DNA of 64,000 nt from Corallochytrium limacisporum Hawaii (lineage: Eukaryota; Protista; Pluriformea), in assembly GCA_002811645.1 (NCBI GenBank), contig PDIP01000026.1, forward strand, positions 1 to 64,000, given 5' to 3'. Shown here piece after piece: positions 1 to 46,600 of the stretch. The notes under the pieces were generated by a model. The model was not told the origin of the DNA. It saw only the letters and a program-made list of their open reading frames with translations, and ran no database searches. The first letter of the stretch is position 1; each line of letters begins with the position of its first letter. The translations under genes and the position numbers were made by a program.

Positions 1-16
1 CCCTAACCCTAACCCT
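1..16 (-). repeat. Telomeric repeat (CCCTAA)n / (TTAGGG)n, about 2.7 units, at window start
   Basis: Sequence starts ccctaaccctaaccct, the C-rich strand expected at a left chromosome end. The tract is short, so it could be trimmed or interstitial. Confidence 0.75.
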
Positions 17-3000
17 TCTCCATTTCATTCTTAGCCGTGGGCTGCAAGTACTTATGCTCATGTTCGGGTAGTTTTCCTTTTGGAGGAAGTTTGAGCTGTG
101 GCAGGGGTTTTAGATTCACAGCAGGAACATGATTTATGCTCTGTGTGACACCGTTTGAGCCTGCTCGGACAGCCGGTGTAATGAAAGAGGGGCTTGCGTA
201 GTCATTCTCGAGCTCCTGCTGGACAACCGCCTGTGCAATGAAGGAAGGTCTTGCGTAGTCATTCTCATCGTCGGAATATGAATCGTCTTCGTCCAATTGT
301 GGATTGGGAACAACAACTGGTGCACCTGCACAAGGTGTTTTTCTTTTTGGTGAAGGCGCAATTGCGTACAAAGCAAGCACATACACAGCTCCAATGATAA
401 TATAAAGTGCTACCAGACCCCAATTGGTGCCTTCACACTCTACACAGTTTCCACCCCACTCATAATACCCATCCATACAACGACCGCAGAGAAAATTGTC
501 GTGGCTCTGTTCACGACCATCGGCGCACTGACTCACGTTGGCGGACGCCATGGCTTCGGTCAGGGTCACAGATGTATCACGCTGCTGTCTAAGAGCACGT
601 CTACGATGCTCCTGCATTGATGTCACCCATGCATCATGATTGATTTCTCGGCGCCGCGAACTCGTCGATGTAAAGTCTATGTTTTGTGTCAAGACCATTG
701 CGACACCTCCAAGACAGTAGCCGGTTGGGCACTTTTCGGCAAGGACAGAACCATCTTCATTGAAATACCCCCAGTAATCAACATCAATTACGGCTAGCCC
801 TTCCACACAACTAACACCAGCGACTTCAGGACATGCAAAGCACTCTGACATTCCACCGGCAATGTTATAGAAACCAGACGGACAAGTCAGGCAGACACTG
901 AGACCTGGTGTTGGTGCATATGTACCTGATTGGCAGCGATTACATGATGTACTTGCCTCGTTCTCAGAGTACAACCCAATTGGACAATCAATACAAGATA
1001 TCGCTCCAGAGTCAGGTTGATATGTACCTGCTGAACAGGCCGTGCACATTCCGTTCACAGCAATATACCCGGGAGTACAGCTTTCACAACGGGTTTGTTC
1101 AGCATTGGCAGAAGTCCCCTCTGGACAGGCAATGCACTCTGATCCACCCTCTGATGCAGATATTTGACCAGATGGGCAAGGCAATGGGGACGACATCAAG
1201 ACTATTGGACATTGTTTGCCAGCAGGACAATCCACACACTCATCGTTAAATTCGTAGGTGCCGATTTCACACCCATCGCAGCCAATACCATCACTTCGAG
1301 ACACCTCGCCAGCCCCACATACCTGTGGCACGGACGTACCCGCGGTGGGACAGCTGTGGCCATCAGGGCAAGCTACACATTCACCATGCAATTCGTATGT
1401 ACCTGCGGAACAGGGCTCGCAATCGCTTCTGTCATCAGTCATGATCTCACCGGCGGAACACTCCTGAGGCACAGACGTTCCTGGAGATGGACAGCTATGA
1501 CCGTCGGGACAAACCACGCACTCACCACGTAACTCGTATGTACCTACCGCACAAGGCTCGCAAGCGCTTCTGTCTTCAGTCACGATATCACCTGCTGAAC
1601 ACTCCTGCGGCACAGATGTACCAGTGGTGGGACAGCTGTGGCCATCCGGACAAACAATACACTCGTCACGTAACTCGTAGGTGCCTATTGCACAAGGAAC
1701 ACAGGCGTCTTTTTCGTCATTCACAACGTCCCCTGCCGAGCATTCCTGAGGCACAGCAGTGCCCGCGGTGGGACAGCTATGACCATCCGGACAAATCTTG
1801 CACTCATCCCGTAACTCATATGTACCAGCAGGACAAGGATCACATCCATCTTTATCATCGTTCACGACATACCCTGCTGAGCATTCCTGAGGCTCAGACG
1901 TGCCAGTGGTGGGACAGCTGTGGCCAACGGGGCAAACCACACACTCATCACGTAGCTCGTATGTACCCGCAGGGCAAGCTACACAACCATCCCTGTCATC
2001 ATTTACGATGTAACCTGCCGAACATTCCTGAGGTGCAGACGTACCAGCGGTCGGACAGCTGTGGCCATCCGGACACGTTTTACACTCATCCCGTAGCTCG
2101 TACATACCAGCAGGGCAAGGATCACATCCATCTTTGCTCTCGTTTACAATATCACCTGCAGAGCACTCCTGAGGCACAGACGTGCCAGCGGTAGGACAGC
2201 TGTGACCATCCGGGCAAACTAGACACTCATCACGCAACTCATATGTACCAGCAGGGCAAGGATCACAGCCACTCTTGTCCTCGGTTACAATGTACCCGGC
2301 TGAGCACTCCTGGGGCTCAGAAGTACCCGCAGTGGGACAACTGTGACCATCAGGACAATCTACGCACTCGCCACGTAACTCGTAGGTGCCTATTGCGCAA
2401 GGGACACAGTCGCTTCTGTCCTCCGACACTATTTCGCCAGCTGAACACTCATCCGGCACCGAAGTTCCTGCGTTGGGACAGCTATAGCCATCAGGACAAT
2501 TTATACACACACCACGTACCTCGTATGTACCTATCGCGCAGGGCTCGCAGCCACTTTTGTCTTCTTTCACGACTTCGCCTGCTGAGCACTCTAGGCATTT
2601 GTTCGATCCGCGAGATGGGGTGTAGTAGTGAGTGTCACAAGCATCGCAAACCGATCTACCAATATCGGCGGTGTAGTAACCGTAGTCACAATCATTGCAT
2701 TCGCTCATTTCAGTGACGTTGCCAAACTTCCCAATAGGGCACGGAAAGCAGACGTCCATTCCAATGACGTCAGCATAAGTACCAGTGCCACAAGGGGTAC
2801 AGTCCTCCAGGCCTGGTTCGGAAGAGTATCGTCCAAGAATACAGGCGGTACATGTGCTTTGCACATTTCCAAAATCGACCATTGGCCGGGCCGCTCCCTG
2901 GCCATCCACAATTGGTCCCTGGTAGCCCGCGTCGCAAAGACGGCAGTCGGGTCCAGTGAAGCCGGTCTGGCAAACACAAGTGCCATAAATGGGGTCACCA

Positions 3001-5072
3001 GCTTGCAATCCCAGCAGTGAAATTGCGTTGTTGGCATCGTTGAGTGTCCGGGTACACACACCACGACCGAAGCATTCCGCTTGACACTCAACTGCCACGT
3101 TGTGTACGTACGAATAGTTCATGTCTGTGGTCCCATCACCAAGGATAAAATCCATGTCTCCGTCGCCGTCGATATCGATTGCCACCAGAGTTTGATACGT
3201 TGCAGTGAAGTCGTGTTGGAACCATGGTGAGGTGTACGTTACATCCGTCCAAACACCGTTTTCACTCTCGTAGAAGCGAAGGGAAATACCATCATTGTTC
3301 ATGTCTTGCACGGCGATCACGTCAAGATCATTGTCACCATCGATGTCCACGATGTAAAACTGTGGAGGCTCAGACTGTACTGAGTCAGATACATCTACGG
3401 AGGCAAACGGGTCCGTAGCATCAAGTACCCACGTATTGTACGCGCCCCCATTGTTACTGCCAGCAATGAACTTTCCCCCGTTATCTACCAAAACAATATC
3501 CTTCATGGCGTCATTATTATAGTCGACGCATCCCAGTTTCTGGTCGTCACCTGCATAGAAATCTCCGCTTGAGAATTGAATGGCGTCTGACCATCTCCAG
3601 GTTGGTGTCTCCGCATCGCCAGAATTTTCAATGCAATAGTATTTGTCGCTGACCCCCGGATCGTTGGCAACTACTAGCAGATCCTGCAACCCATCATTGT
3701 TCATGTCACACAAAGTGAGGAAAAGCTGATCTCCTCCGGCAATCACGTTCTCGTGCACATCATTCAAAATTCCAGACTGGACGGGTACGGGATTTGAGCC
3801 AGTGTCGGTCTCAATCAAAGCGTAACCTTCCTCAGAACCCTGATTCCACAGGACGCGAGGGGGATTTGTCCCCCCCTCACATATGATGACCTCTGGTATG
3901 CCGTCCCCGTTCAAGTCACCCGAAGTGGCCCAGTGGCCACGGTTAGATTGTGGTTCAATGGGCTGCCAGGTGCCTTCGACATCGTTGTCAGTTTCAAGTC
4001 CAAAGGCATGGTTGCCAGCGGAACCCAGGTTTAGCCAAATGCGAAGGTTCGCTCCCACACTACAGGAACCATCCTCACCGTTTCCAAGACCAATCATATC
4101 CAGATCACCATCGAGGTCTATATCAGCCCAAGTCAGTTTCGTGAAAGGATCCAGTGCCATGCGGTAGAAAGGTGAATGTGTCGGCTGGTGCTCGTATGTG
4201 CCATACCCATTCTCCATGTAGAACACTCTGCCTGTCGTTGAAGTGAACAGGACATCCAAATACCCGTCGTTGTTTAGGTCCACTGCGCTGGCTACCGCCT
4301 CGGAGGCATCACCTGCATAATCAAAGGCAGATGAACCTAGGTCCAACTCTATAAGCTCATGAGAACTCTGGTCAGCGAGTGCCATGTTTTCGCTATCACC
4401 CGTGTTTAGATAGACACGCATGCTGTATGGTGTGACCGAGTCACGGTCTTGTCCGACGAGAAGATCCAGGTCCCCATCCCCATCCCAATCTACCAACTCA
4501 GGGACAACCTCTGAGATACCGGTATCAGCGATACCATTGCCAACGACAGAGAAAGGATTGTCGACAGAGGCCTGACGTGTGAAGACGGGTGCGATGGCTG
4601 TGCCAGTATTCTTAAACCAGAAGATTATCTCGCGAGTGCCCGGGTCGGCAGCTGCACACCCAACCACAATGTCCATGAGTCCATCACCATCGACATCTCC
4701 TACAGTGGGCGCAGGGAAATTGCAGGTGATATCAGTGCGTATCTCACTCCCACTCAAAACTCCACTGTCAACCCATTTGCCATTGGCGTTCATGGTGTAC
4801 AGGTACATCTCATCGACACCACCCCCAGTCTTTTGGTGCGTTATGACCAAATCTGGAAACTGGTCACCGGTGAAGTCTGCGGCCGCTACCTTGGCTTTGC
4901 ATTCCCATGAGGCATCAGGAATTAGGGACGCTGGTGAATCCCTCCGATCAGTGATGTCGCGCCACTGTGGGCGCCCTGGTACTATGGTTTGACCTGTCAC
5001 GAATCCCGTTGCCATGAAAAGCATGGCAGAGGCCCGAAGACCTACCACCCGCACTTGTGGTTTTGACCTCAT
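9..5072 (-). CDS. Large single-pass surface receptor/adhesin: FG-GAP/VCBS repeats, EGF-like domain, Cys-rich (ephrin-receptor-like/TNFR-like) repeats, TM helix, Tyr-motif tail
   Basis: Many DxDGDGDxD-type Ca-binding motifs, CVCQTGFTGPDC EGF motif, CxxCxxGTY repeats, TM WGLVALYIIIGAVYVLALYAI. ATG at 5072 precedes a signal-peptide-like segment (the ORF-track start at 5264 is GTG). The stop TAG lies inside the telomere repeat. Confidence 0.85.
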   Translation of the reverse strand: MRSKPQVRVVGLRASAMLFMATGFVTGQTIVPGRPQWRDITDRRDSPASLIPDASWECKAKVAAADFTGDQFPDLVITHQKTGGGVDEMYLYTMNANGKWVDSGVLSGSEIRTDITCNFPAPTVGDVDGDGLMDIVVGCAAADPGTREIIFWFKNTGTAIAPVFTRQASVDNPFSVVGNGIADTGISEVVPELVDWDGDGDLDLLVGQDRDSVTPYSMRVYLNTGDSENMALADQSSHELIELDLGSSAFDYAGDASEAVASAVDLNNDGYLDVLFTSTTGRVFYMENGYGTYEHQPTHSPFYRMALDPFTKLTWADIDLDGDLDMIGLGNGEDGSCSVGANLRIWLNLGSAGNHAFGLETDNDVEGTWQPIEPQSNRGHWATSGDLNGDGIPEVIICEGGTNPPRVLWNQGSEEGYALIETDTGSNPVPVQSGILNDVHENVIAGGDQLFLTLCDMNNDGLQDLLVVANDPGVSDKYYCIENSGDAETPTWRWSDAIQFSSGDFYAGDDQKLGCVDYNNDAMKDIVLVDNGGKFIAGSNNGGAYNTWVLDATDPFASVDVSDSVQSEPPQFYIVDIDGDNDLDVIAVQDMNNDGISLRFYESENGVWTDVTYTSPWFQHDFTATYQTLVAIDIDGDGDMDFILGDGTTDMNYSYVHNVAVECQAECFGRGVCTRTLNDANNAISLLGLQAGDPIYGTCVCQTGFTGPDCRLCDAGYQGPIVDGQGAARPMVDFGNVQSTCTACILGRYSSEPGLEDCTPCGTGTYADVIGMDVCFPCPIGKFGNVTEMSECNDCDYGYYTADIGRSVCDACDTHYYTPSRGSNKCLECSAGEVVKEDKSGCEPCAIGTYEVRGVCINCPDGYSCPNAGTSVPDECSAGEIVSEDRSDCVPCAIGTYELRGECVDCPDGHSCPTAGTSEPQECSAGYIVTEDKSGCDPCPAGTYELRDECLVCPDGHSCPTAGTSVPQECSAGDIVNESKDGCDPCPAGMYELRDECKTCPDGHSCPTAGTSAPQECSAGYIVNDDRDGCVACPAGTYELRDECVVCPVGHSCPTTGTSEPQECSAGYVVNDDKDGCDPCPAGTYELRDECKICPDGHSCPTAGTAVPQECSAGDVVNDEKDACVPCAIGTYELRDECIVCPDGHSCPTTGTSVPQECSAGDIVTEDRSACEPCAVGTYELRGECVVCPDGHSCPSPGTSVPQECSAGEIMTDDRSDCEPCSAGTYELHGECVACPDGHSCPTAGTSVPQVCGAGEVSRSDGIGCDGCEIGTYEFNDECVDCPAGKQCPIVLMSSPLPCPSGQISASEGGSECIACPEGTSANAEQTRCESCTPGYIAVNGMCTACSAGTYQPDSGAISCIDCPIGLYSENEASTSCNRCQSGTYAPTPGLSVCLTCPSGFYNIAGGMSECFACPEVAGVSCVEGLAVIDVDYWGYFNEDGSVLAEKCPTGYCLGGVAMVLTQNIDFTSTSSRRREINHDAWVTSMQEHRRRALRQQRDTSVTLTEAMASANVSQCADGREQSHDNFLCGRCMDGYYEWGGNCVECEGTNWGLVALYIIIGAVYVLALYAIAPSPKRKTPCAGAPVVVPNPQLDEDDSYSDDENDYARPSFIAQAVVQQELENDYASPSFITPAVRAGSNGVTQSINHVPAVNLKPLPQLKLPPKGKLPEHEHKYLQPTAKNEMEKG
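1179..2588 (-). repeat. Intragenic tandem repeat, about 10 x 141 nt (47-aa Cys-rich unit)
   Basis: Unit CSAG.IV.ED...C.PC..GTYELR.EC..CPDGHSCPTAGTS.PQE occurs 10 times, with the last copy degenerate. Confidence 0.9.
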
Positions 5073-8475: not shown

Positions 8476-9852
8476 GACCAACCCCCCAAACGCAGACATA
8501 TGGAATGTGTTGGGAATCCCCGCGCAGAAAAGGGAAACCATATAAACCAGCCCGTACGCGTAAATCACTCTGTGTTCCATACCGTAAACTCTGCGGTTCC
8601 ATTGCTTGGTTGCGGGCGATGAAAACCGAGCAGTGTCCCACTTGCGAATGCGTCTGCCTGCGCTCTAAGATTTCAGTAAACCTGCTCCTTTTGGCAGACA
8701 AGGGGGAAAATCTATGAAACGTACACAAAGGAGGGAAGCGACGGACGGGGATAAGGGAGGGGGGAGGGGGAGGGAGATTTTTGTTCTCAGATGTCGGTAG
8801 TTGCTTCGCTATCTTTCTGCTAAGTTTTGCACTGGAAGTTCGAGATGAAAGGTGTTGAGAAAACTTCAGAGATTATGTTTCTGCACAGTGTGATTTGTCG
8901 TCTCATGTGTGTTGAGATTGTATCTCGAAGGAATAGTCGTAACGGTTGTGTTACCCCGTGCTCAAGAAATGGATAGAAGGCGGTAGTGTCAGAAATCTGC
9001 AAGACATACGATCGGCACCGGTCGAGACACATGCGCTGGGCGGCAATCAGGCAGGGAAAGGACAAAGGAAAGCGACTGGTCATTGGCGCAGGTACTGTCG
9101 GTGGCGCCGCACCTTCACGAAAGTAGATCAGCAGAGGGAGGTCATAGACCTAACCTAACCTAAGTGGCCGGACGCAATTGCTGTCACGATCGCAGTGTTC
9201 CACCCCCGCACTGGGCCCGTCGTGGTGGCGCCCTCCTTCACCAGGGGACCAAAACTGATGAGGGATCGGGGGCGAGACGAAAAGAAACACTAGCTTAGGC
9301 ACAGCGCAAGGGCATTTTTTCTAAAACCCGTGAGCTCCGCCCGCTCAACCAGAAATTGCCACCGCTCGTGAACAAATTTTTCCTAGTGTATCGTTTCGTT
9401 TACTGATGAGTTTTCCCTCCCAACTTAGAATGCGCAGATGAACGGGAGAGCATTTACAACGAAAAGTAAACAAATACATTCTATACTGAATTTGGAAAGT
9501 TTGGCTGGGATACTACCAAACTTACCACCGAAAGGGGCCTGACCACGGCCGGGATTAGGGTTCGGCCCGGGGGCTGCACCGTTAGGTGCACGGACGTTCC
9601 AACTGTACGTAGTGAGGCTGCAGGAGTTTTCTGAATTTGACGTTGGAACAGACTGTTCCTGGGCGGGAAGCTTGCTTTTCTTCTGAGCTGCCGTGGTAAG
9701 CTCCTAAAGAAATAACGGCTTTGTCCAATCCATGGGCTTCCTGACAATTTGTCAACAGCGAGACTTAAAGAACATAGCTGACATAACGAGAACAATACAT
9801 GAATTGAGGACCATGAATCGATAGCTGAGGACCATATTGCTAGCGTAAAGAA

Positions 9853-12575: not shown

Positions 12576-14117
12576 ATGGCAATGGTTGTCACGGTCACGA
12601 ATGAAGTCGGTCCATCCAGATTGAGCTTCAAAGACGACATCACACGACAAATAGCAAATACTAAATCTCCGGAAAGAAAGTCCAGATCGGTTAACACCAT
12701 AGACAGCATAGGTGTGCGACAGCGTTCAGAGGCAACTTCGACTAGTGATCCCTTTGACCATGGGCGCAGTGTTGAAGAAAGCTTGGCGGCTTCCTCGTCC
12801 ACGGAAGGAAACCGTCAGGAGTCTGAAATCGACTCCAAGAAAGGCTACCCACAGGTAATTGGCGTAACTTCCTTAGCCATGATTGTGGGAGCTCTAAGTC
12901 TGTGTTGGGGTATCTATATTCCACGCATTGTTGACGACATGAACACATCCTTAGCTATGGCATCCTTTGCCGGTGCTCTGTCCTTGACCATCAGGGCAGC
13001 ACTGGCACCGTGGGCGGGTAGTTGGCCTGCAAGGTTCGGATCGCAAAAGGTGGTTATTGTCGGTAGCACTGTGATCAGCATCGGACTTATTGGATGCAGC
13101 TTCTCAACCAACGTCTGGGAGCTTTACCTATTCTTCGGTCTGACTGTGGGCATGGGGCTTAGCATGCTGCTTTACCCAGGATCATACGTTGTCATTCAAT
13201 GGTACCGCAAAAAGAAGGCGATGATGCTTGGTTTTGCACTTGGAAGTACTGGGGTTGGTGGCTTTATCTACAATATCGTGGCTGCGCTGCTAATTGAACG
13301 GTATGACTGGAGAATTGCCTTGCGACTGACGGTCCTTTGGGTTATGTTTTTCACGGCGGTCGGTGTGCTGCTGATCAGGGACCGCGTGCCGCCCAAGAAA
13401 GTACCCACACGTATAGATTGGTATCTATTCAAGGATGCGCGCTTTGTTCTCATGTTCATGTGCAATACTTTCTTCAGCTTTGGGTACGCTGCACCTTTCT
13501 TCTTCACGGTGACCTGGGCAGAACGGTACGGCATGTCCAGCACGGTGGCTGCCGTAGCAACCGGTGGCATCGCCATTTCAATGGCTGTCGGCACCCCGGT
13601 GCAGGGCTGGATCGGTGACCGTACCGCCCGGGATATGGTGTATGTGGTGTGTATGTTGTGTGCGGGAGCCGTACTATTTCTGTGGCCAGTTTGCAAGACG
13701 GAATGGCCCCTCTTGATCGTGTCATTTGTGTACGGCTTTACAACTGGTGGCCAATCAGCGAATACCGCAGCGATCATCACAGATTGGTTCCCAAAGCATG
13801 ATCCAGGCAAGGTTAATGGTCTGAGTGGTGCTGGCAGGGCAGTGGGGGAGCTCTTCGGTCCTGTCCTGATTGCTATGCTATTCGACACGAGCGCAGAGGC
13901 CGCCTTTATGCTTTCCGGCGCCTTTATGATCCTCACTGGAATATCCATCTACGTTGGATCAATCTGGCTCAAAATCCGCAATGACTCAGGACTAGAAAAC
14001 GTATCGTACACTTCTGTGAGCCAAACCCAAGATTATGTGGATCAGAATGGCAATGGTCAGGTGCCCATGTCAGAAATCAGCAGGCTCTCCGATCCCTCAC
14101 AGCCGCGTGCACAATAG
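12576..14117 (+). CDS. MFS transporter, SLC16/MCT-like, array copy 1
   Basis: 513-aa ORF with DSKKGY N-terminal motif, IQWYRKKKA, GWIGDR, about 12 TM segments. Confidence 0.9.
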   Translation: MAMVVTVTNEVGPSRLSFKDDITRQIANTKSPERKSRSVNTIDSIGVRQRSEATSTSDPFDHGRSVEESLAASSSTEGNRQESEIDSKKGYPQVIGVTSLAMIVGALSLCWGIYIPRIVDDMNTSLAMASFAGALSLTIRAALAPWAGSWPARFGSQKVVIVGSTVISIGLIGCSFSTNVWELYLFFGLTVGMGLSMLLYPGSYVVIQWYRKKKAMMLGFALGSTGVGGFIYNIVAALLIERYDWRIALRLTVLWVMFFTAVGVLLIRDRVPPKKVPTRIDWYLFKDARFVLMFMCNTFFSFGYAAPFFFTVTWAERYGMSSTVAAVATGGIAISMAVGTPVQGWIGDRTARDMVYVVCMLCAGAVLFLWPVCKTEWPLLIVSFVYGFTTGGQSANTAAIITDWFPKHDPGKVNGLSGAGRAVGELFGPVLIAMLFDTSAEAAFMLSGAFMILTGISIYVGSIWLKIRNDSGLENVSYTSVSQTQDYVDQNGNGQVPMSEISRLSDPSQPRAQ

Positions 14118-14570
14118 CTCATCAAAGGTCACTTTCACAACCCTTTCCCTCCCCGCTACCGCATTGGTGGCTAAGAGTTGTGCTCGGCGCAGGATAAACC
14201 GCCCCTCTGACCGCACCGCGTCTCTCCGTACCCAATTCCCCCTTTCCCCCTTGCCGCTGCCTCAACTGAGTCACGGTCACTGTTGCCACGACGGGCCAGA
14301 AATGAAGTAAACTTGCGTATTCCCCTCCCCGCAGATAGTAATATACAATAATATACCAAATAGTCAGCATTATGATACATGTGTCACCTTGGTATCGGAT
14401 CAAGACCCGCCATTTTTTTCCGAAGGGAGGACCACAAAGGGGAGTCCTTGTCCAATCCATTTCATCACACTGCAAATGGTGCTATTAAGGAGAGTGCTTT
14501 CACTGCCCATAAACCATAGCCCTGATGATTATCAACATTGAAATTCTTGTAGACCGAAAATACAACCGCA

Positions 14571-16157
14571 ATGTCTGCTGTTACGCTTACAAAACCTGTC
14601 AGTGCACCTAGATTGAGTCTCAAAGATGACATCACACGACAGCTGCCCACCAGACGATCTGTAGAAAGAGCTCGCGGCATTGGGCCTCAGGAGAGTACAA
14701 TCAAGCCTGTAGAGACAAGTACCAAAAACACTAACACAGTAGATAGTATAGGAGAGAAAGATCCTACCGAGGCAACCTCGATCAATGATCTTTTTGACGA
14801 TGGATCTGGGGTCGAAGAGAGGTTAGCAAGTACCGCTTTTGCAGAGGAAAACCGACTGGAACCTAGAATCGATTCCAAGGACGGTTATCCGCAGGTAGCT
14901 GGTGTTTTCTGCATTGTCTTTGTGGTGGGGGCCCTGAGTCTGTGCTGGGGTATCTTTATGCCGCGTATAATTGATGACATGAACATATCCTTAGCTGTGG
15001 CATCTTTTGCCGGTGCTCTGCTATTGACCATCAGGGCAGGGGTGGCCCCGTGGGCGGGTAGTTGGCCCGGAAGGTTTGGGTCGCAGAGAGTCGTGGCTGT
15101 CGGTTCCATTTTAGTTTGCGTCGGACTAATCGGAAGCAGTTTTGCAATCGATATTTGGGAATTATACGTATGCTACAGTTTGATGGTGGGCATGGGACTT
15201 AGTCTCCTGCTCTATCCAGGATCGTACATCATTATTCAATGGTACAGCAAAAAAAAGTCCATGATGCTTGGTTTTGGGCTTGGCAGTTTGGACTTTGGCG
15301 GTTTTGTCTACAATATCGTGGCTGCGCTACTGATTGAACGATATGGCTGGAGAGATACCTTGCGTCTAACGGTGGGTATGGTTTTGGTATTGACTATCAC
15401 GGGTGTACTGCTCATCAGGGATCGTCTTCCGCCCAAAAAGGTGAGCACACGTTTAGATTGGTATCTATTTAGGAATCCGCGTTTCTTGTTGGTCTTCTTG
15501 TGCAATATATCCTTCAGCTTTGGAAAACGGGTACCCACGTTCTTCACGGTGATTTGGGCAGAGCGCCACGGTATGTCCAGCACTATTGGTGCCATTGCCA
15601 CAGGTCTCATGGCCTTATCTGGCGGAATTGGAATTCCAGTACAAGGTTGGATCGGTGACCGTACAGCCCGAGATACAGTATTTGTGGTAAACATGTTGTG
15701 CGCTGGAGCAGTACTCTTCATATGGCCTGTCTGCAAGACGGAATGGTCACTATTGTTAGTGTCAGTGCTGTGCGGCTTTCTCATAGCTGGCCAAACAGCA
15801 AATACCGCGGCGATCATTACGGATTGGTTCCCAAAGCATGAACCCGGAAAGATCAGCGGTTTGAGTAGTGCTGGCAGGGCAATTGGGGAGCTTTTTGGCC
15901 CTGTCCTAACAGCTGCGTTTTTTGACTCTCATCTTGGCGCCGCTTACATGCTTTCCGGTGCCCTTATGATGTTCACCGGGATATCCATCTACATTGGATC
16001 CGTTTGGCAAAAGATCAGCAATAAGCCCTCATTAGATAATGTTTTGCAGCCGTCTGTGGCTCAGGTACATGACATTGATGGGCAAAAAAGTATTCGTGAT
16101 CTGTCATTGACGGATTTCAGCAAGAACTCCAATCATTCACAACAGCAAACACATTAG
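14571..16157 (+). CDS. MFS transporter, SLC16/MCT-like, array copy 2 (most divergent)
   Basis: 528-aa ORF, collinear paralogue of copy 1. Confidence 0.9.
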   Translation: MSAVTLTKPVSAPRLSLKDDITRQLPTRRSVERARGIGPQESTIKPVETSTKNTNTVDSIGEKDPTEATSINDLFDDGSGVEERLASTAFAEENRLEPRIDSKDGYPQVAGVFCIVFVVGALSLCWGIFMPRIIDDMNISLAVASFAGALLLTIRAGVAPWAGSWPGRFGSQRVVAVGSILVCVGLIGSSFAIDIWELYVCYSLMVGMGLSLLLYPGSYIIIQWYSKKKSMMLGFGLGSLDFGGFVYNIVAALLIERYGWRDTLRLTVGMVLVLTITGVLLIRDRLPPKKVSTRLDWYLFRNPRFLLVFLCNISFSFGKRVPTFFTVIWAERHGMSSTIGAIATGLMALSGGIGIPVQGWIGDRTARDTVFVVNMLCAGAVLFIWPVCKTEWSLLLVSVLCGFLIAGQTANTAAIITDWFPKHEPGKISGLSSAGRAIGELFGPVLTAAFFDSHLGAAYMLSGALMMFTGISIYIGSVWQKISNKPSLDNVLQPSVAQVHDIDGQKSIRDLSLTDFSKNSNHSQQQTH

Positions 16158-16667
16158 CCCACCGCATTGTCAGGGCTAGTACGGCCTTCCCCCCTCCTTC
16201 CTTCCTTTCTGCCAATCGCCTCGGAAACTTGGCCAGGGAGTGCTTTGCCCGCAGCGCGGACGCTGTTGCCGGGCCTGAGAAGTTTTTCCTCTCCCGTTCC
16301 CCTTCCCCCGTTTCCGCTTTTCTGCTGACCCCCCCCTCTCCCGGCTCGCCGGTCACGATCTCTGTTGTCACGACTGCCCTTCAGTTAGCTAAGCGAACAC
16401 CCTCCCCCTTCCCGGGGGGATCCACCATTACACGCGCAGTCAATATCGGAAGATCGTGCCGGTCATACCTCAATTTTCTGCGCAACGACAGCTATCGTGG
16501 CCCCCACCCCGCCCCCCGGGGGGGGGAGGGGAGACCGCCCTCGATTCGGGGTGTGAACCTGCTGTGCGATTCATGGTATGTAAGGGGAAAGGCTTCATGG
16601 CCCCCAAACCACAACTCGGACAAGTATTCTCCAAATAGAGTACGCTTAGAGATTGACAATTGTGACC

Positions 16668-18270
16668 ATGTCATCTGCGGTCACGCTTACAAGTCAGGTC
16701 AGTGAACCTAGACTGAGTTTCAAAGATGATATCACAAGACAGATGACGATCAATAGATCACCAGAAAGAAGTAGCAGATCTCAGGATAGTACAAGCAAGT
16801 CTCCAGAGACGAGCACCAGAGCGGTGAATGCAATAGATGGTACAGGCGTGAGACAGCGTACCGAGGCGACCTCGACCAATGATCTTTTTGACGATGGGCG
16901 TCGGTTCGAAGAGAGCGTGGCTGCGCCTGCAGTCACAGAAGGAATTCGATTGGAACCTAGAATCGATTCCAAGGACGGTTATCCTCAGGTAGCGGGCGTT
17001 TTCTGCATTGGTATTGTGGTGGGGGCCCTGAGTCTGTGCTGGGGTGTCTACATTCCACGTATTGTGGATGACATGAGCACATCCTTGGCTATGGCATCAT
17101 TTGCTGGTGGTCTGGCGTTGACTAGCAGGGGAGCAGTGGCACCGTGGGGGGGGCAGTTGGCCTGGAAGGTTTGGATCGCGGAGGGTAGTCATTGCCGGTG
17201 GTGTGGTGACCAGTATCGGACTAATTGGCACCAGTTTTGCAAGCAATGTCTGGGAACTGTATGTATTCTACGGGCTAATGGTGGGTATGGGACTGAGTCT
17301 TATGCTTTACCCAGGATCGTACATTATTATTCAATGGTATCGCAAAAGAAAGGCGACAATGCTTGGCATAGCACTCGCAAGCATGGGCGTTGGAGGTTTT
17401 CTCTACAATATTGTTGCTGCAGAACTGATTGACCGATTTGGCTGGAGAGATACCTTGCGAATGACAGTGGTGATTGTGTGGGCATTTCTGTCTCCGGGTT
17501 TGCTACTCATCAGGGATCGCGTGCCGCCAAGAAACGTGAGCACGCGCCTGGACTGGCATCTGTTCAGGGACGTGCGCTTTTTCCTAGTCTTCCTAAGCAA
17601 CATACTATTCAGCATTGGCTATGCGGCGCCATTCTTCTTTACCGTCACTTGGGCAGAGCGCCATGGTATGTCCAGCACTGTGGCAGCCATTGCTACGGGT
17701 GTCATCGCCGTATGCGCTGGTCTCGGTACTCCAGCGCAAGGTTGGATCGGCGACCGGACCTCCCGAGATATAGTTTATGTAGTGTGCATGCTATGTGCTG
17801 GAGCAGTACTCTTCTTGTGGCCAGTCTGCAAGACGGAGTGGACACTACTACTAGTGTCGCTGCTCTACGGCTTTGTCACAGGCGGTCAATCAGCCAATAC
17901 CGCAGCGATCATCACGGATTGGTTCCCAAGGCATGACCCGGGCAAGGTCAATGGTTTGAGCGGCGCAGGCAGGGCAGTGGGGGAGCTATTCGGCCCTGTT
18001 CTAATTGCCATGTTATTTGACACGAGCCCTGAAGCTGCGTTTATGCTTTCCGGCGCCTTTATGATGTTGGCCGGCTTATCTATCTACGTTGGATCCATTT
18101 GGCCCAAGATCAGAAGCGGCTCAGGCCTAGACAACGTCTCGTACACATCTGTGGCCCAAGGGCATGAGTCTGAGGAGCAACAGAGCAGTGTTGATTTTCC
18201 CTTGACAGATCACACCAGGAAGTCCAATCCATCACATTCGCGTGCGCAAGAGCTGACCGATTCCCAGTAA
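16668..18270 (+). pseudogene. MFS array copy 3, +1 frameshift at G8 run (17146-17153); otherwise intact
   Basis: Split into ORFs 16653..17432 and 17203..18270. Removing one G restores APW-G-GSWP as in the paralogues. Could be a homopolymer sequencing error. Confidence 0.7.
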
Positions 18271-19332
18271 AGCATTCCAATTTCCCCCCTTGCCTTTTTA
18301 GTCTTGCGATTGATCGAGATTTCCGACCCTCTTCCGGGTCTACCCACCTCCGTTTCTTCGCACATTCAGTACCGAACTTCCCAGAAAGAGCAGCCTCCAC
18401 CGCATTGCGCCTCTATGGGAAAGCGGGGCCACAGAGCAGCAGGGGGCACGGGAGGCGACAACGCGCAGGAGAACTGAGCAAACGAGAAAACGCCCTGAGG
18501 CATCCCTGCGCCGGGGGGTGCGGTTGAGGAGAAATCCATCTGCCAGGGGTGCCCAAAGGGAAAAGGACTGGCAGAGGGTCTACGTACAAATCGGGACCGT
18601 TGATTTTCCCTTTCTTTTTTTCCCTTTTTTTTTGGTTTTTGGTTTCTTTAAACTTTTTCTTTTTCTGTCGCTTCGATTCGTAGTGGGCAGGGTGGGGTCA
18701 AGCACGGTGGCCAGCCTAGGCGTCAGCACGAACTCTGGGGGTTCCTCCCCTCCCCCCCAGGGCGCAAGTCTTCCCCGGGCAAGATCAAAGTGATTCGACG
18801 GTGGTACGGGTCGGGGCCCGGCACCCCCCGGGGGCTGGCGGGGAAGGGTTTTGGTTGGAATGTTTTAAGTTCAGTTTTCTGGCAAGATACCCAACACAGT
18901 TTTTTTTTTCCCTTTCTTTTCCTTTTTGTTTCTAATTCGTGCCCTTTACCTTTCCTGTGCTTTTTTTGCGGTGTGTTTCTGCTGTATTCAGAGTTTGTCC
19001 CTCTACTCCTGCCCGCCTTCGCCTTTTTTTTTGGTCCGGTTTTCCTTGATATCATATGATAGCTGTTGCCATGACGGGAAAATTCTATACTGAGAGTAGG
19101 AGGGTAAGAATGGGGCCCCGAAGCACTCCCAAGTAGTTGGACATCCAATCGGTGTGTGTTGTAGCTTCAAGAGCAAACGTTGGATCATCTCAGCAAGAAT
19201 GTGAGGGTTGCGCTTTTACCTAATTCAGTTATGAGTTGAATATATGTGCTATTAGTAAGCTGCTTTTGCATCTGTTGCCGAATGTTATGAGCACTCACAA
19301 AGTGAATTCTTACAGATCGGGCAATTGCGACC

Positions 19333-20493
19333 ATGTCATCTGCGGTTACGCTCACAAGTCAGGTCAGTGCACCTGGACTGAGTTTCAAAGATGACATCAC
19401 AAGACAGATGACGATCAATAGATCACCAGAAAGAAGTAGCAGATCTCAGGATAGTACAAGCAAGGCTCCGGAGACGAACACGAGAGCGGTGAATGCAATA
19501 GATGGTACAGGCGTGAGACAGCGTACCGAGGCGACCTCGACCAATGATCTTTTTGACGATGGGCGTCGGTTCGAAGAGAGCGTGGCTGCGCCTGCAGTCA
19601 CAGAAGGAATTCGATTGGAACCTAGAATCGATTCCAAGGACGGTTATCCTCAGGTAGCGGGCGTTTTCTGCATTGGTATTGTGGTGGGGGCCCTGAGTCT
19701 GTGCTGGGGTGTCTACATTCCACGTATTGTGGATGACATGAGCACATCCTTGGCTATGGCATCATTTGCTGGTGGTCTGGCGTTGACTAGCAGGGGAGCA
19801 GTGGCACCGTGGGGGGGGCAGTTGGCCTGGAAGGTTTGGATCGCGGAGGGTAGTCATTGCCGGTGGTGTGGTGACCAGTATCGGACTAATTGGCACCAGT
19901 TTTGCAAGCAATGTCTGGGAACTGTATGTATTCTACGGGCTAATGGTGGGTATGGGACTGAGTCTTATGCTTTACCCAGGATCGTACATTATTATTCAAT
20001 GGTATCGCAAAAGAAAGGCGACAATGCTTGGCATAGCACTCGCAAGCATGGGCGTTGGAGGTTTTCTCTACAATATTGTTGCTGCAGAACTGATTGACCG
20101 ATTTGGCTGGAGAGATACCTTGCGAATGACAGTGGTGATTGTGTGGGCATTTCTGTCTCCGGGTTTGCTACTCATCAGGGATCGCGTGCCGCCAAGAAAC
20201 GTGAGCACGCGCCTGGACTGGCATCTGTTCAGGGACGTGCGCTTTTTCCTAGTCTTCCTAAGCAACATACTATTCAGCATTGGCTATGCGGCGCCATTCT
20301 TCTTTACCGTCACTTGGGCAGAGCGCCATGGTATGTCCAGCACTGTGGCAGCCATTGCTACGGGTGTCATCGCCGTATGCGCTGGTCTCGGTACTCCAGC
20401 GCAAGGTTGGATCGGCGACCGGACCTCCCGAGATATAGTTTATGTAGTGTGCATGCTATGTGCTGGAGCAGTACTCTTCTTGTGGCCAGTCTG
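19333..20493 (+). pseudogene. MFS array copy 4, near-identical to copy 3, same G8 frameshift (19811-19818), truncated by N-gap
   Basis: ORFs 19333..20097 and 19868..gap; differs from copy 3 visibly only in the first ~160 nt. Confidence 0.65.
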
Positions 20494-20812
20494 NNNNNNN
20501 NNNNNNNNNNNNNNNNNNNNNNNNNNNNNNNNNNNNNNNNNNNNNNNNNNNNNNNNNNNNNNNNNNNNNNNNNNNNNNNNNNNNNNNNNNNNNNNNNNNN
20601 NNNNNNNNNNNNNNNNNNNNNNNNNNNNNNNNNNNNNNNNNNNNNNNNNNNNNNNNNNNNNNNNNNNNNNNNNNNNNNNNNNNNNNNNNNNNNNNNNNNN
20701 NNNNNNNNNNNNNNNNNNNNNNNNNNNNNNNNNNNNNNNNNNNNNNNNNNNNNNNNNNNNNNNNNNNNNNNNNNNNNNNNNNNNNNNNNNNNNNNNNNNN
20801 NNNNNNNNNNNN

Positions 20813-21992
20813 TATTGTGGATGACATGAACACATCCTTGGCTATGGCATCTTTTGCCGGTGGTTTGTCATTAACCATTAGGGCAGCAGTAGCTCCTTGG
20901 GCGGGGAGCTGGCCCGGAAGGTTTGGATCGCGGAAGGTGGTCACCGTTGGGGGCATACTGATTTGTATCGGACTGATCGGAAGCAGTTTTGCAAGCAACG
21001 TCTGGGAACTGTATATATTCTACGGCCTGATGGTTGGTATGGGACTTAGCCTCCTGCTCTACCCAGGATCGTACATTATTATTCAATGGTACCGCAAAAA
21101 GAAGGCCATGATGCTTGGTTTTGGGCTCGGAAGTTTGGGCATTGGCGGCTTTGTATACAATGTCGTGGCTTCGCTACTGATTAATCAATATGGCTGGAGA
21201 GATGCCTTGCGAATTACAGTATTGCCTGTTTTCGTGTTCTTAGTGGTCGGTTTGCTACTTATCCGGGATCGTGTGCCGCCAAGAAGAGTGAGCACGCGTC
21301 TGGACTGGCATCTGTTCCGGGATGTACGCTTCTTCCTTGTCTTCTTATGCAATGCGTTCTTCAGCTTTGGATATGCCGCGCCATTCTTTTTCACGGTCAC
21401 TTGGGCAGAGCGCCATAACTTGTCAAGTACTGTTGCTGCCATTGCCACGGGTTTCATTGCCATATCCACCGGTCTCGGCACACCGGTACAAGGCTGGATC
21501 GGTGACCGTACCGCTCGAGATATAGTGTTTGTGGTGTGTATGTTATGCGCCGGTGCAGTGCTGTTTCTGTGGCCAATTTGCGTCACAGAGTGGTCGCTGC
21601 TGCTAGTGTCGCTGCTATACGGCTTTGTCACAGGAGGTCAATCAGCAAATACCGCAGCGATTATCACGGATTGGTTCCCAAGGCATGACCCGGGCAAGGT
21701 CAATGGTTTGAGCGGCGCAGGCAGGGCAGTGGGGGAGCTGTTCGGCCCTGTTCTGATTGCCATGTTATTTGACACGAGCCCTGAAGCTGCGTTTATGCTT
21801 TCCGGTGCCTTTATGATGTTCACAGGCATTGCCATCTACATTGGATCCATTTGGCCCAAGATCAGTAACGGTTCAGGCCTAGACAATGTTTCGTACACGT
21901 CAGTAATCCGAAGGAGTGAATCTGAGGAGCAACAAGGCAGTGGCGATTTGGCCATGACAGACATTAGCAGGAACTCCAATCCAATACAATAG
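20813..21992 (+). CDS. MFS array copy 5, 5' end missing in the N-gap
   Basis: Open frame from IVDDMNTSLAMASF to a stop at 21992. Confidence 0.8.
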
Positions 21993-22806
21993 TGTACGAA
22001 TGAACGCATCCGATATTCAGTCAACAAGCCTGCAAAGAAACATGTGGTCCGAAGACATGTGTCCTCTACGCACTGTTACCATCCACCCATTCTTCGGGGC
22101 CGAAACTCCCGGAAAAGCAGTTTATGTCAGAATGCGCCATAATTGGCAAGCGGAGCGGGTCAGAAAATGGGAGCGGAGCCCGGCCTTACGCAACGAAAAA
22201 GGGGGGGGGGCCGGGAGGGAGAGGGCTCATTTGCAAAGTTGGATCCTTCGGTCAGTTTTGTGTGGCGTTCTCTCGCCGTTTCTTCGGATGTCGGCTGCGC
22301 AAGGAAGGTGGTAGGCTTGTTTTGGATGAGGGAAGGGAAGTGAGTGGAGCATTCGAGGCGGGTGAGAAAAAACCAAAGTTGGCGTCAGCATGCGCTCTTG
22401 CGGTGCTCTCTGTGGGGCATTGGAAAAGAACGCCGGGTTGGAGGGCGGGTTTGATTCTCGCCTCATTTACACCTGCCCATCGCGCCCCCCAAACTTTCCC
22501 TTTGCTCCCTCTACTTGGATCACCATTGCGGTCTCCATGGTGGGCGCATTGGCACGGTGTGCTTGTGCATAGGGAGTCCACAAAACGGCCTGCCCTACGC
22601 TCTGCAAACTATTGAATGATGGCCAGTATTATGATCTAGGGTAACTGGATCATGCGCTTTTCTGGCCAGCAGTAATGCGGGGATTTGTTCTATACTAAGT
22701 TCAGGTATGAGCCTGACATTTAGCTATTAAGAAACAGACTTTGCGTCTGCTGAGAAATCTTATGAGCATTCACAAACTTGATTCGCATAGATCGACAATT
22801 ACGGAC

Positions 22807-24378
22807 ATGACATCTGCTGCTACTCTCACAAGTCAGGTCAGTACACCTAGATTGAGTTTCAAGGATGACATTACAAAACAGGTAACCAGCAATGGATATC
22901 CAGAAAACAGTAGTAAACCTGCGGACAGTATAAGCAAGTCTTCAGAGACGAGTGTCAGAACTCTTAACACCAGAGATGGTGTAGGTGTGAGACAGCGTAC
23001 GGAGGTGGCCTCGACCAATGATCTGTTTGACGATGGGCATCAGGTCGAAGAAAGCTTAGCGACTTCCGCTGTTACAGAAGGAAATCGACTCGAGCCTAGA
23101 ATTGATTCGAAGGATGGGTATCCGCAGGTAGCTGGTGTTTTCTGCATTATCTTCGTAGTCGGAGGGTTAAGCCTGTCCTGGGGTATATACATTCCACGTA
23201 TTGTTGATGACATGAACACGTCCTTGGCTATGGCATCTTTTGCCGGTGGTCTCGCAATGACTGTCAGGGCAGCAGTAGCACCGTGGGCGGGCAGTTGGCC
23301 CGGAAGGTTCGGATCGCAGAGGGTGGTCGCCGCCGGTGGGGTTGTTATTAGCGTCGGACTAATCGGTAGCAGTTTTGCAACCGACGTCTGGGAACTGTAT
23401 GTGTTCTACGGTCTGATGGTTGGTATGGGACTGAGCTTGCTGCTCTTCCCAGGATCGTATATTATTATTCAATGGTACCGCAAAAAGAAGGCGACAATGC
23501 TTGGCGTTGCCCTTGCAAGTATGGGCATTGGCAGCTTTGTCTTTAATGTAGTGGCTGCGCTACTGATTAACCGGTACGGCTGGAGAGGTGCGTTGCGAAT
23601 TACAGTGGTGATGGTATCTGCCCTCCTGTCCATCGCTTTGCTACTCATCAGAGATCGTGTACCTCCAAGAAAAGTGAGCACGCGTCTGGACTGGCATCTG
23701 TTCAGGGACGTGCGGTTCCTCCTGGTCTTCTTGAGCAACGTGTGTTTCAGTTTCGGCTACGCCGCACCATTCTTTTTCACGGTCACTTGGGCAGAGCGCC
23801 ACGGTATGTCCAGCACTGTTGCTGCCATTGCCACGGGTTTCATTGCCATATCCACCGGTCTCGGCACACCGGTACAAGGCTGGATCGGTGACCGGACCTC
23901 CCGAGATATAGTGTTTGTGGTGTGTATGTTGTGCGCTGGAGCAGTACTCTTCGTGTGGCCAGTCTGCAAGACGGAGTGGTCGCTGCTGCTAGTATCGCTC
24001 CTCTATGGTTTCGCCACAGGTGGCCAATCAGCCAATACCGCAGCGATCATCACGGATTGGTTCCCAAGGCATGACCCGGGCAAGGTCAATGGTTTGAGCG
24101 GCGCAGGCAGGGCAGTGGGGGAGCTGTTCGGCCCTGTTCTGATTGCCATGTTATTTGACACGAGCCCTGAAGCTGCGTTTATGCTTTCCGGTGCCTTTAT
24201 GATGTTTACAGGCATAAGCATCTACGTTGGGTCCATTTGGCCAATGATCAGCAATGGCTCAACTTTAGACAATGTTTCGTACACATCTGTAACCCAAAGG
24301 CGTGAATCTGAGGAGCAGCAGGGCGCTGTTGATCTGCCCATGACAGGAATCAGCAGGAACTCCAGCTCCTCGTTATAG
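22807..24378 (+). CDS. MFS array copy 6
   Basis: Intact ORF. ATG 22807 (MTSAATLTSQ) aligns with the paralogue starts. Confidence 0.9.
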   Translation: MTSAATLTSQVSTPRLSFKDDITKQVTSNGYPENSSKPADSISKSSETSVRTLNTRDGVGVRQRTEVASTNDLFDDGHQVEESLATSAVTEGNRLEPRIDSKDGYPQVAGVFCIIFVVGGLSLSWGIYIPRIVDDMNTSLAMASFAGGLAMTVRAAVAPWAGSWPGRFGSQRVVAAGGVVISVGLIGSSFATDVWELYVFYGLMVGMGLSLLLFPGSYIIIQWYRKKKATMLGVALASMGIGSFVFNVVAALLINRYGWRGALRITVVMVSALLSIALLLIRDRVPPRKVSTRLDWHLFRDVRFLLVFLSNVCFSFGYAAPFFFTVTWAERHGMSSTVAAIATGFIAISTGLGTPVQGWIGDRTSRDIVFVVCMLCAGAVLFVWPVCKTEWSLLLVSLLYGFATGGQSANTAAIITDWFPRHDPGKVNGLSGAGRAVGELFGPVLIAMLFDTSPEAAFMLSGAFMMFTGISIYVGSIWPMISNGSTLDNVSYTSVTQRRESEEQQGAVDLPMTGISRNSSSSL

Positions 24379-43642: not shown

Positions 43643-46600
43643 ATGAGCAAATTCGTTCGCGGTGTAAAGGCGAAGGGAGGCAGTCCCGTGCAGAGGGCGG
43701 TCCGTGGTTTAACTAGCAACGATGATAACAATCTTGCTTTTTCACGGCAGGACCTTCGGACTGTCCACGAGGCCAGTCATTCATTGGCGAAAATGAGAGA
43801 GCTACAGGACACCTTAAGTCGGCGGTTAAACGATTCAAGTAGCTGGCGGCACTGTCTGAAGGCATTGCTGCTCATAGAGTTTTTAGTTCGGAATGGTGGA
43901 GAAGCGTACGTTCAGCGCTATATTATGTCAGACATGGGTCGCATCGTAGGACTAGAATGCTACATATCATCACAAACTGTGGCGGGACAGAGGGTTGAGG
44001 TTGCCATCCAAGGCAAGGCAAGGGATCTGGTTAATACGTTGAACTCCGGTGCCCATCTCATGAAGGTTCGCTTGGAGGCGAGTACTACTGGAATTGATAC
44101 GGAGATTGCCCGCTGGCGCAACGAGCTGACGCCGTTCGTGGCGAATCCCATGGTGTTTGATGGAACGGGGGACGATGCTAATCATGGGACTCGCTCCTCT
44201 GGCGACAGTCTGAGCTCTTCCGGTGGGTATAGTAGTACAAAAGCAGCTACGGCAACAAGCGCTTACGGCTATGGCATTGCAAACCCGGGCAAGAACCGCC
44301 ACCGTGGCCTGCAGGAACCCCCAACTGTCGCTCCCCGCCGACGATCTGTAGACTCTGCTGAGCACGAGCACAGCCCGAGAAAGACGACAGGAGGTAGCAC
44401 TGATCGCAACAAGAGCGGAAAGACAGGGCCACCGCCACCACGACCTCCTAAATCCTCCGAAGTCACGGAGAAAGCGGCGGCATACCAGCGGAGTCTGTCC
44501 AACACTTCTCTAGAAAAGAGTCTGCCACCACGGCCTGCCAAAGACCCGTATGTGCTGCCGCCGAAACCAACGGCGACATACAAGCCACCCCCAAGATCTG
44601 TAGCAGGTCCTGAATCGACAAACGCCTCAGAAGGCGTGCAGGGTGGCGGATACAAATCTTCCACTGTTGCATACAAATCATACAAGCCACCAGACGGATA
44701 CAAACCACCTGGACAACCGAATCAGAATGAATCATCACAACAGCAGGCGTCAATGGATGCAGGGACACTGCCAGATAAACCACGGGGTAGTAGGATTCTT
44801 GTAAAGAAAATGCCGGATCAGCGGGCGCGGATGTCACAGCGTGGAGCTGTACTGCAAGAGTTGATGGCTCGTACGCAGAAGGAAGCTCCTGCAGCAGTTA
44901 GTCCGCGCACATCCCAGCTGAATCCCGTACGTTCTACCGCTGAGGAGTCGGTTCGCAGGAACCAACAGGCCGTCTTTGATGAGCTGCTAAGGACGGCACC
45001 GCCACTGGAGCCAGTACGGGAACCAGAACTGCCACCGAAGTCGGAAGCGGAGCAAAAGATCGAACCAGAACGGGACGTGTGGGCGGAACCAGACCCCACT
45101 CTCTTGGCAGCGGGCCATACCGTGCCACTGGATACTAAGGACACACTGCAGGAAGAAATTAACAAATTGAGTGCGCATTTGAACCAACTCGAAGCTGAAC
45201 GCAGGAAGACCAGTGAACTGATGCTACCGGAGCGACCGTCAAGCTCGACAAGCGCTCCTGAAGTAACCGTTGTCAGTCCTGAAGTACCTGTGCCGGAACG
45301 CGACTACAGCGAGGATCCCTTCAAAATGCTATGGCCAACCAAAAAAGACACGGGACCAAAGACTCTGCAGGAGATGCAGAGAGCAAAGGAACAAGAGAGG
45401 GCACACAATAAGAACCAGTCGAGCGCTGTGCCTCCGCCGCGTAATTCGACTTCTAATTTGCACTATCAAAACCAGCATCAGAAACAACAAATGCACCATG
45501 CCCAGCGCAATTTGGAGCAGTTGACAGGTCGAGCACCATCACCACAGCCATATGCACAACAAACGCAACAGACTCAGTACCGGAATGGAGCGCAGGGCCA
45601 CACTGTTGTGCAACAGCGGCAGCAACACTTGCAGCAGGCACAGCGGGCGATGCCAGCCATGGACTTTGGTGTCATGCCGAACGGTGGCCCTTCTCCATTG
45701 GCTCCCGAGAAGATCAGTCCTCCGCCGCGATCAAAGTCAGATGATCGGCTGAATTCACCTGGGCGGGATCTTTACCAGTTTGATCCCTACCGCGAAGACG
45801 AGCAGCAAAAGAAGATCAATCAGCAACAACAGCAACAGCAACAGCGACAACAGCAACAGCAACAGCAACACCAGCTTCAGCACCAGCTCCAACACCAGCA
45901 CCAGCACCAGCACCAACCACAACAGCATCCACAACGACAACAACAGCAGCAGCAGCAGTATCGCCAGCAACCATCTCTTGCTACATCGCCGCAACAGCAT
46001 GGTCAATACATGGGCCAGCAACGCATGATGCAACCCCAACAGGGACCACAACAGTTACCTCTGCAACCTGTACGTGTCGAGCAGCACCATGCCATTCCGC
46101 GACCGAAAACGGCTCGCCAGTGGCAACAACCACCATCCTTGGTGCAGCAACAGCAGCAAGTACCCGCAGCCAGTAGCTACACACCAACGGTCGAGCACAA
46201 CGCAGGACTGGGCTTTGACGAAGTTGACCGGATGCGCCTTGTGCCAGAGAAGCAGATCGGTTCGGGTCACTTTGGAAGTGTGCATATGGGCAAGATGATG
46301 ATGAGCGCTGGTGAGGCTTACAATGGTGGTTACGATCGAATGAACCACCACTCGCCTTTTCACCATGCGCAGGAGCCGCCCACGAGCAATGGTATTGTCT
46401 CTATCCGCGTGGCCATCAAGGTTCTCCGGTCCCAGGGCTGGGATCCTGAGTTCCACAAAAGTTTTATGGAGGAATCGGCCGCCATGCGGAACCTGAGCGG
46501 TGAATTTGTGGTCAACTTGATTGGTGTGAACGTAAAGCAACAGCCGTATCTGATGGTAATGGAATTTATGGACAAGGGTTCCCTCGAGGGCGTGTTACGG

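Follow-up and report, generated by a model that had tools for sequence, protein, structure and literature searches.

In Plasmodium falciparum 3D7, telomere healing has been found at 5 of the 28 ends, four of them inside var genes (PMC5550746), and human 22q13 terminal deletions carry TTAGGG junctions with 1-5 nt of microhomology to the repeat (PMC3136441). Breaks in Oscheius tipulae and Ascaris are developmental and somatic, being confined to an SFE motif or to defined break regions, and spare the germline; the nanochromosomes of Oxytricha are gene-sized, accompany nuclear dimorphism and have heterogeneous telomere sites. For Corallochytrium limacisporum, a genome of 24.1 Mb with 7,535 genes has been reported (PMC5560861). 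Our limited literature search found no telomere paper for this species and no report of a gene split over two retained telomeric ends.

The window, which is the whole stretch of 64,000 nucleotides analyzed here, starts at the very start of contig C171 (PDIP01000026.1) in the 24.1-Mb, 286-contig genome assembly, where a receptor gene runs into telomeric repeat (Table 1). Read codon by codon on the minus strand, the gene ends in ATG (23-21), GAG (20-18), AAG (17-15), GGT (14-12) and TAG (11-9). The Gly and stop codons lie entirely within the repeat and 2 bases of the Lys codon match it too; the statement of the preliminary description that the telomere supplies both codons is exact. The AGG at which the match begins (14..16) is identical to the first three unique bases behind the telomere of another contig, C190 (L047:22-24).

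In DNA run X1, which probably comes from the source sample, one Logan contig (depth 179) covers the receptor gene from end to end and extends the repeat of C171 by 12 bases, to 28 nt, with the same junction. A length of 28 nt is the obligatory stop of a k=31 unitig if the array is longer and joins that of end C274, whose last two unique bases are the same as those of C171; the array is thus at least 28 nt long in source run X1. No branch, loose end or second path was seen at the junction in this contig, a type of contig that can drop rare variants. Since 22 other ends share the repeat, X1 adds 12 repeat bases and the path is single, the start of C171 is a true chromosome end. An interstitial tract of 2-3 units or a single chimeric read, the two artifacts of which the preliminary description had warned, is unlikely at this junction.

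Table 1. Coordinates of the features discussed in the text (positions in the window unless a locus is named).
Feature	Position	Strand	Remark
Telomeric repeat (TTAGGG)n at contig start	1..16	-	2.7 units of CCCTAA
Final Gly codon (14-12) and TAG stop (11-9)	9..14	-	both telomere-derived
AGG, first three repeat-matching bases	14..16	-	candidate telomerase priming overlap
Receptor ORF, single-copy, 1,687 aa from first Met	9..5072	-	ORF and profile matches
FG-GAP_3 (PF13517) repeats	3144..4877	-	profile match
Ephrin_rec_like (PF07699) Cys-rich repeats	825..2834	-	include 141-nt tandem array 1322-2591
LCGxCxxGY..CxxC module	435..491	-	precedes multi-TM domain in homologues
Sole transmembrane helix	360..416	-	aa 1617-1635 of 1751-aa frame
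Hydrophilic cytoplasmic tail, ~116 aa	15..359	-	two NDYAxPSFI copies and YLQP motif
Cut signal-peptide ORFs (C10, C143, C263)	L033:22-150; L046:24-218; L052:7747-7914	-; -; +	no Pfam match

Several further observations were made in and around the window. EukProt model P0001 corresponds to the receptor protein (window 15-5072) and ends at the Lys, without the telomere-coded Gly; this ending fits a transcript that diverges after AAGG, but a gene prediction that is only partial, or masking of the repeat, would account for it equally well. A 26-nt patch at window 73-98 (minus strand) is near-identical, with one gap and one mismatch, to C92:12996-13020 (L041), and lies just inside two different telomeres (C171 and C92) in the same orientation. 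Even with one mismatch allowed, its 16-nt core is found nowhere else in the 24 Mb, and the score of the patch was equalled in 1 of 60 random sets. A short internal (CCTAA)3 tract is found at 9149-9163, 9 kb from the end. Farther inward, positions 12576-24378 hold some six MFS transporter paralogues in tandem, two of which (16653-18270 and 19333-20824) carry the same apparent frameshift, and a 1,172-aa ORF on the plus strand (43643-47161) has an ENTH-like N-terminus and, by eye, a tyrosine-kinase-type HRDLAARN motif.

The open frame of the receptor runs from 5264 to 9 on the minus strand (1,751 codons), with its first Met at 5072, and encodes in order a probable signal peptide, FG-GAP repeats, a Cys-rich stalk, one transmembrane (TM) helix and a tail. 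The preliminary description had stated that the Cys module is often followed by several TM helices in protist proteins and had seen only one here. Both points were confirmed: among the 92 homologues with at least 150 aa after the module, 91 have at least two TM helices and 76 at least five, while in the receptor the single helix is at aa 1617-1635 only. Multi-TM protist proteins with PF07699 (P0047, P0011) align with the receptor over the Cys-rich repeats, the LCxxCxxG[YF]..CxxC module and TM1. The receptor thus has the Cys module and then TM1 of such proteins and lacks the further helices; unlike them, it has a bacterial-like FG-GAP region at the N-terminus and a tail with Tyr motifs that replaces TM2-7. 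This tail is acidic and Pro-rich and gave no alignment to TM2-7 of the homologues.

The break at the telomere is not what took the missing helices away. The family alignment ends right after TM1 and the 116-aa tail precedes the telomere; loss of TM2-7 by the telomere break was rejected, as the loss lies 116 residues (350 nt) before the repeat. Judging from the alignment, the multi-TM domain was probably lost earlier, in a separate event directly after TM1. We found no close paralogue of the tail, the TM module or the FG-GAP region in the genome, and the continuation past KNEMEK that the preliminary description hoped to read from paralogues has no close relative there to supply it. Orthologue searches with the receptor returned only its own EukProt model and distant domain matches. 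A contig of X3, a probable RNA run, covers tail positions 65-316, and three of the four differences that other samples show in the gene are synonymous third-position changes (p ~0.11); these changes and the RNA contig hint weakly at a gene that works or did so until recently. Other PF07699 genes, at C171:270988, C171:278647 and C186:358272, have open frames of 1,946, 1,852 and 1,955 aa, respectively, and no FG-GAP match.

Telomere repeat is present at an estimated ~45 contig ends genome-wide, chance internal matches being allowed for. We read 23 of these, C171 included. The repeat is 16-67 nt long at the 23 ends, several being as short as C171 (16-24 nt), and most junctions are abrupt and without variant repeats. 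Apart from the 26-nt patch, no sequence shared between ends was found among the 23 within ~0.9 kb of the repeat. At 8 of the 23 ends, a long ORF lies no more than 170 nt from the repeat. Coding sequence is cut at five: C171, C10, C143 and C263 carry 5′ halves and C190 a 3′ half; at other ends the telomere lies 17-170 nt from intact genes. No enriched 5-8-mers that could represent a breakage motif were detected within 100 nt of the 23 junctions. Telomerase reverse transcriptase (TERT) is encoded in the genome (PF12009 at C201, E 1.7e-30, in a 1,135-aa frame).

The 5′ halves at C10, C143 and C263 look like secreted proteins. They are signal-peptide ORFs of 43, 65 and 56 aa that stay open into (Gly-Leu)n telomere frames; none of the three has an in-frame partner among the 23 ends, and no close paralogue of the C143 piece exists in the genome. 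As had been stated in the preliminary description, TTAGGG gives a stop in one of three frames: the repeat reads as Gly-stop in 2 of 6 phases. Its proposal to look for ORFs closed by the repeat at other telomeric ends yielded, among the 23, the one at C171, the halves at C10, C143 and C263 being stop-less. The repeat thus supplies a stop in one of four cut 5′ halves, a chance-like share. As 2 of 6 phases give a stop and 1 of 4 halves is closed, the stop looks like an accident of frame that needs no adaptive account.

Other features of the assembly were noted during this survey. An intergenic interstitial tract of TTAGG and TTAGGG units at C47:79390-79420 (L036) possibly stems from an old fusion or from repeats inserted by telomerase where a break was repaired. 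Telomere 12-mers face inward at C22:4-15 and C22:278119-278130; if the second is the contig end, C22 is a whole chromosome of ~278 kb. Assembly gaps of ~1.7-1.9 kb lie 1.2-2.2 kb from the telomere at ends C25, C58, C127 and C260 (L034, L038, L045, L049), with gap flanks common to C25/C58/C99 and to C127/C260/C279; the gaps near some ends are collapsed repeated elements, 1-2 kb inward of the repeat.

Contig C190 begins with telomere, directly behind which lies a 255-codon ORF without Met or stop. Its coding score is +46 bits vs. -30 and -69 in the other frames. The encoded piece is hydrophilic, has no TM helix and contains six tyrosines, with motifs YVPS and YEEI; the tail on C171 is likewise hydrophilic and has the Tyr motifs YARP, YASP and YLQP. 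When the last unique base of C171 (17) is butted to the first unique base of C190, a single open frame results with zero bases lost, the longest among all 506 x 3 end pairings, and the computed joined protein has 1,941 aa from Met. The two ends overlap by the 3-nt AGG, as expected if telomerase primed there. Overlaps of at least 3 nt arise by chance in 1.3-2.4% of pairs, which, multiplied by 1/3 for the frame and by four candidate 5′ halves, gives ~0.02-0.03 as the chance of this fit, for a pairing that was identified post hoc.

Other comparisons of the two pieces were neutral or unfavorable. GC3s is 0.41 in the C171 tail vs. 0.53 in the C190 piece (~z = 2), which is mildly against the pairing, and already ranges from 0.51 to 0.42 along the C171 gene. 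In the codon model the pairing ranked 18 of 36. AGG also opens six other ends, there is no genome-wide excess of end overlaps, and any of the ~22+ ends outside the survey could hold the true 5′ half of C190. Similarity between the C171 and C190 pieces is not significant, 540 of 1000 shuffles scoring as well. No close paralogue of the C190 piece was found in the genome and no orthologue in databases and metagenome scans, in which each piece was searched apart; metagenome scans also gave no orthologue of the C171 piece. No molecule across the joint was detected among reads, contigs and proteins, those of X3, X4 and X5 stopping short of the junction. Splicing through the repeats (the first telomere GT as donor, CTAAC followed by AG on C190 as branch point and acceptor) was rejected, as the nearest canonical sites give a frameshift and a stop.

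Taken together, we consider it probable (about 0.8) that the gene was once longer and that a break in its tail was healed by telomerase, a reading that covers a terminal deletion and the programmed case as well. De novo telomere addition into the gene, one of the possibilities put forward in the preliminary description, is borne out by the abrupt junctions, the presence of TERT and the four other cut ends among the 23. At C171 itself, the repeat is abruptly joined to unique DNA at a true end, and the AGG microhomology counts only if C190 is the partner. A double-strand break would have hit the part of a single-pass receptor gene that encodes the cytoplasmic tail, telomerase would have healed it, probably priming on AGG, and the phase of the repeat would have closed the frame with an accidental stop.

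The most specific form of this model is a lossless chromosome fission through the receptor gene, both halves being healed and kept, to which we give somewhat less than an even chance. Both sides of the break would then have been retained, with the C190 ORF as the remaining tail of an original protein of ~1,941 aa, whose Tyr-rich tail measured 370 aa, and the zero base loss would correspond to a cut that was blunt or left a 3′ overhang of at most 3 nt. That the frames of both pieces, C171 and C190, are undecayed suggests that the break is recent and may have arisen in culture. Fission requires that both products segregate. It is improbable that lossless breakage is routine here, programmed or recurrent, with both ends capped and many or all ends being recent breaks; the receptor gene, split over two chromosomes, would then mark one such break.

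A simple terminal deletion healed by telomerase, with gene and chromosome both losing their distal part and the C190 fragment stemming from an unrelated event, is rather unlikely. It is the documented outcome in Plasmodium (PMC5550746) and at human 22q13 (PMC3136441), and both the halves at C10, C143 and C263, which are without a partner among the 23 ends, and the differing GC3 of the two pieces speak for it; yet it leaves the in-frame, zero-loss, 3-nt fit of C190 as a coincidence of ~0.02-0.03. We see little room for an essentially complete protein, whose still-working gene would have lost no more than its last few codons and its 3′ UTR to a break or to erosion. The frame is intact over 1,687 codons, synonymous third-position changes prevail among the differences (3 of 4), a probable RNA contig covers the tail and other ends stop 17-170 nt from intact genes. 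However, a recent cut would leave the frame just as intact, four SNPs make weak evidence (p ~0.11), and the break would need to have hit the gene only a few codons from its stop. That the protein ends in telomere by design is more doubtful still. If the telomere had been adopted under selection as stop codon and 3′ UTR, giving a TERRA-like mRNA end, a transcript through the end would have to carry UUAGGG, given that the frame closes in the repeat. But the RNA evidence falls short of the junction, the X3 contig starting at 65, and the other three 5′ halves enter stop-less Gly-Leu repeats, so that a stop in 1 of 4 is at chance level; this adaptive account, raised in the preliminary description, is extremely improbable.

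Programmed developmental fragmentation, ciliate- or nematode-like, with an intact form in another stage or nucleus, had been the other possibility named there. The mostly abrupt junctions without variant repeats, the lack of subtelomeres and the undecayed state of the cut fragments would suit it, and Oscheius tipulae heals both sides of programmed breaks (10.1101/2022.08.19.504554). Against it, the 23 junctions have no motif in common, no intact copy was found in the assembly or at 179x in the X1 contigs, ciliate fragmentation avoids coding sequence (PMC3558436), and the two nuclei of the cell do not differ in size or shape, no germline having been described (10.1101/2020.11.12.379420); we regard it as unsupported and very unlikely. 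The chance is smaller again that C171 does not end here at all, the repeat being a head-to-head array, a telomere-tipped insertion with AGG duplication (C171|C190) or an assembly artefact. AGG is on both flanks, the two repeat tracts start in mirror phase and an interstitial tract is known at C47:79401. These points are set against a junction that is a single high-depth path, against repeat phases that vary across ends with no general duplication pattern, and against a mate-pair assembly (PMC5560861) that left C171 and C190 unscaffolded. As a general explanation, a telomere-tipped transposon that makes a fixed target duplication was rejected, given the varying repeat phases and the absence of surplus overlaps.

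The telomere-supplied stop is a curiosity of reading frame and a by-product of a known process, telomere healing; the wider pattern of ends matters more. In this free-living close relative of animals, sampled ends have no shared subtelomere and about one in five cuts a gene. If the pairing of C171 with C190 is true, it is a natural, base-precise record of a fission in which each end was healed and neither product was lost, which would bear on karyotype fragmentation and centromere organization in unicellular holozoans. Gene models at contig ends of the C. limacisporum genome may be fragments. The species is transfectable, and two nearly identical strains exist.

With Plasmodium falciparum this locus shares the fusion of telomere repeats straight into coding regions, which there belong to surface-protein genes (PMC5550746). 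In Plasmodium, however, subtelomeres are standard and the distal piece is lost, whereas no sampled Corallochytrium end has a shared telomere-adjacent subtelomere, the gene on C171 is single-copy and its distal piece may be retained. The TTAGGG junctions of human 22q13 are abrupt, as at C171 (PMC3136441); each of those is an isolated pathological event that costs the distal DNA, while healed-looking ends are the norm in Corallochytrium. Elimination in Oscheius tipulae and Ascaris resembles the proposed C171-C190 event in that both sides of a break are healed with few-base priming (10.1101/2022.08.19.504554), but neither a motif nor an intact copy was found for C171. Oxytricha nanochromosomes likewise have telomeres tens of bases from genes and some sites within coding sequence (PMC3558436); in contrast to them, contigs here reach 100-400 kb and the junction is single. 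What is new in Corallochytrium, compared with these systems, is the combination of ends without shared subtelomeres, frequent cuts through genes and a candidate lossless fission.
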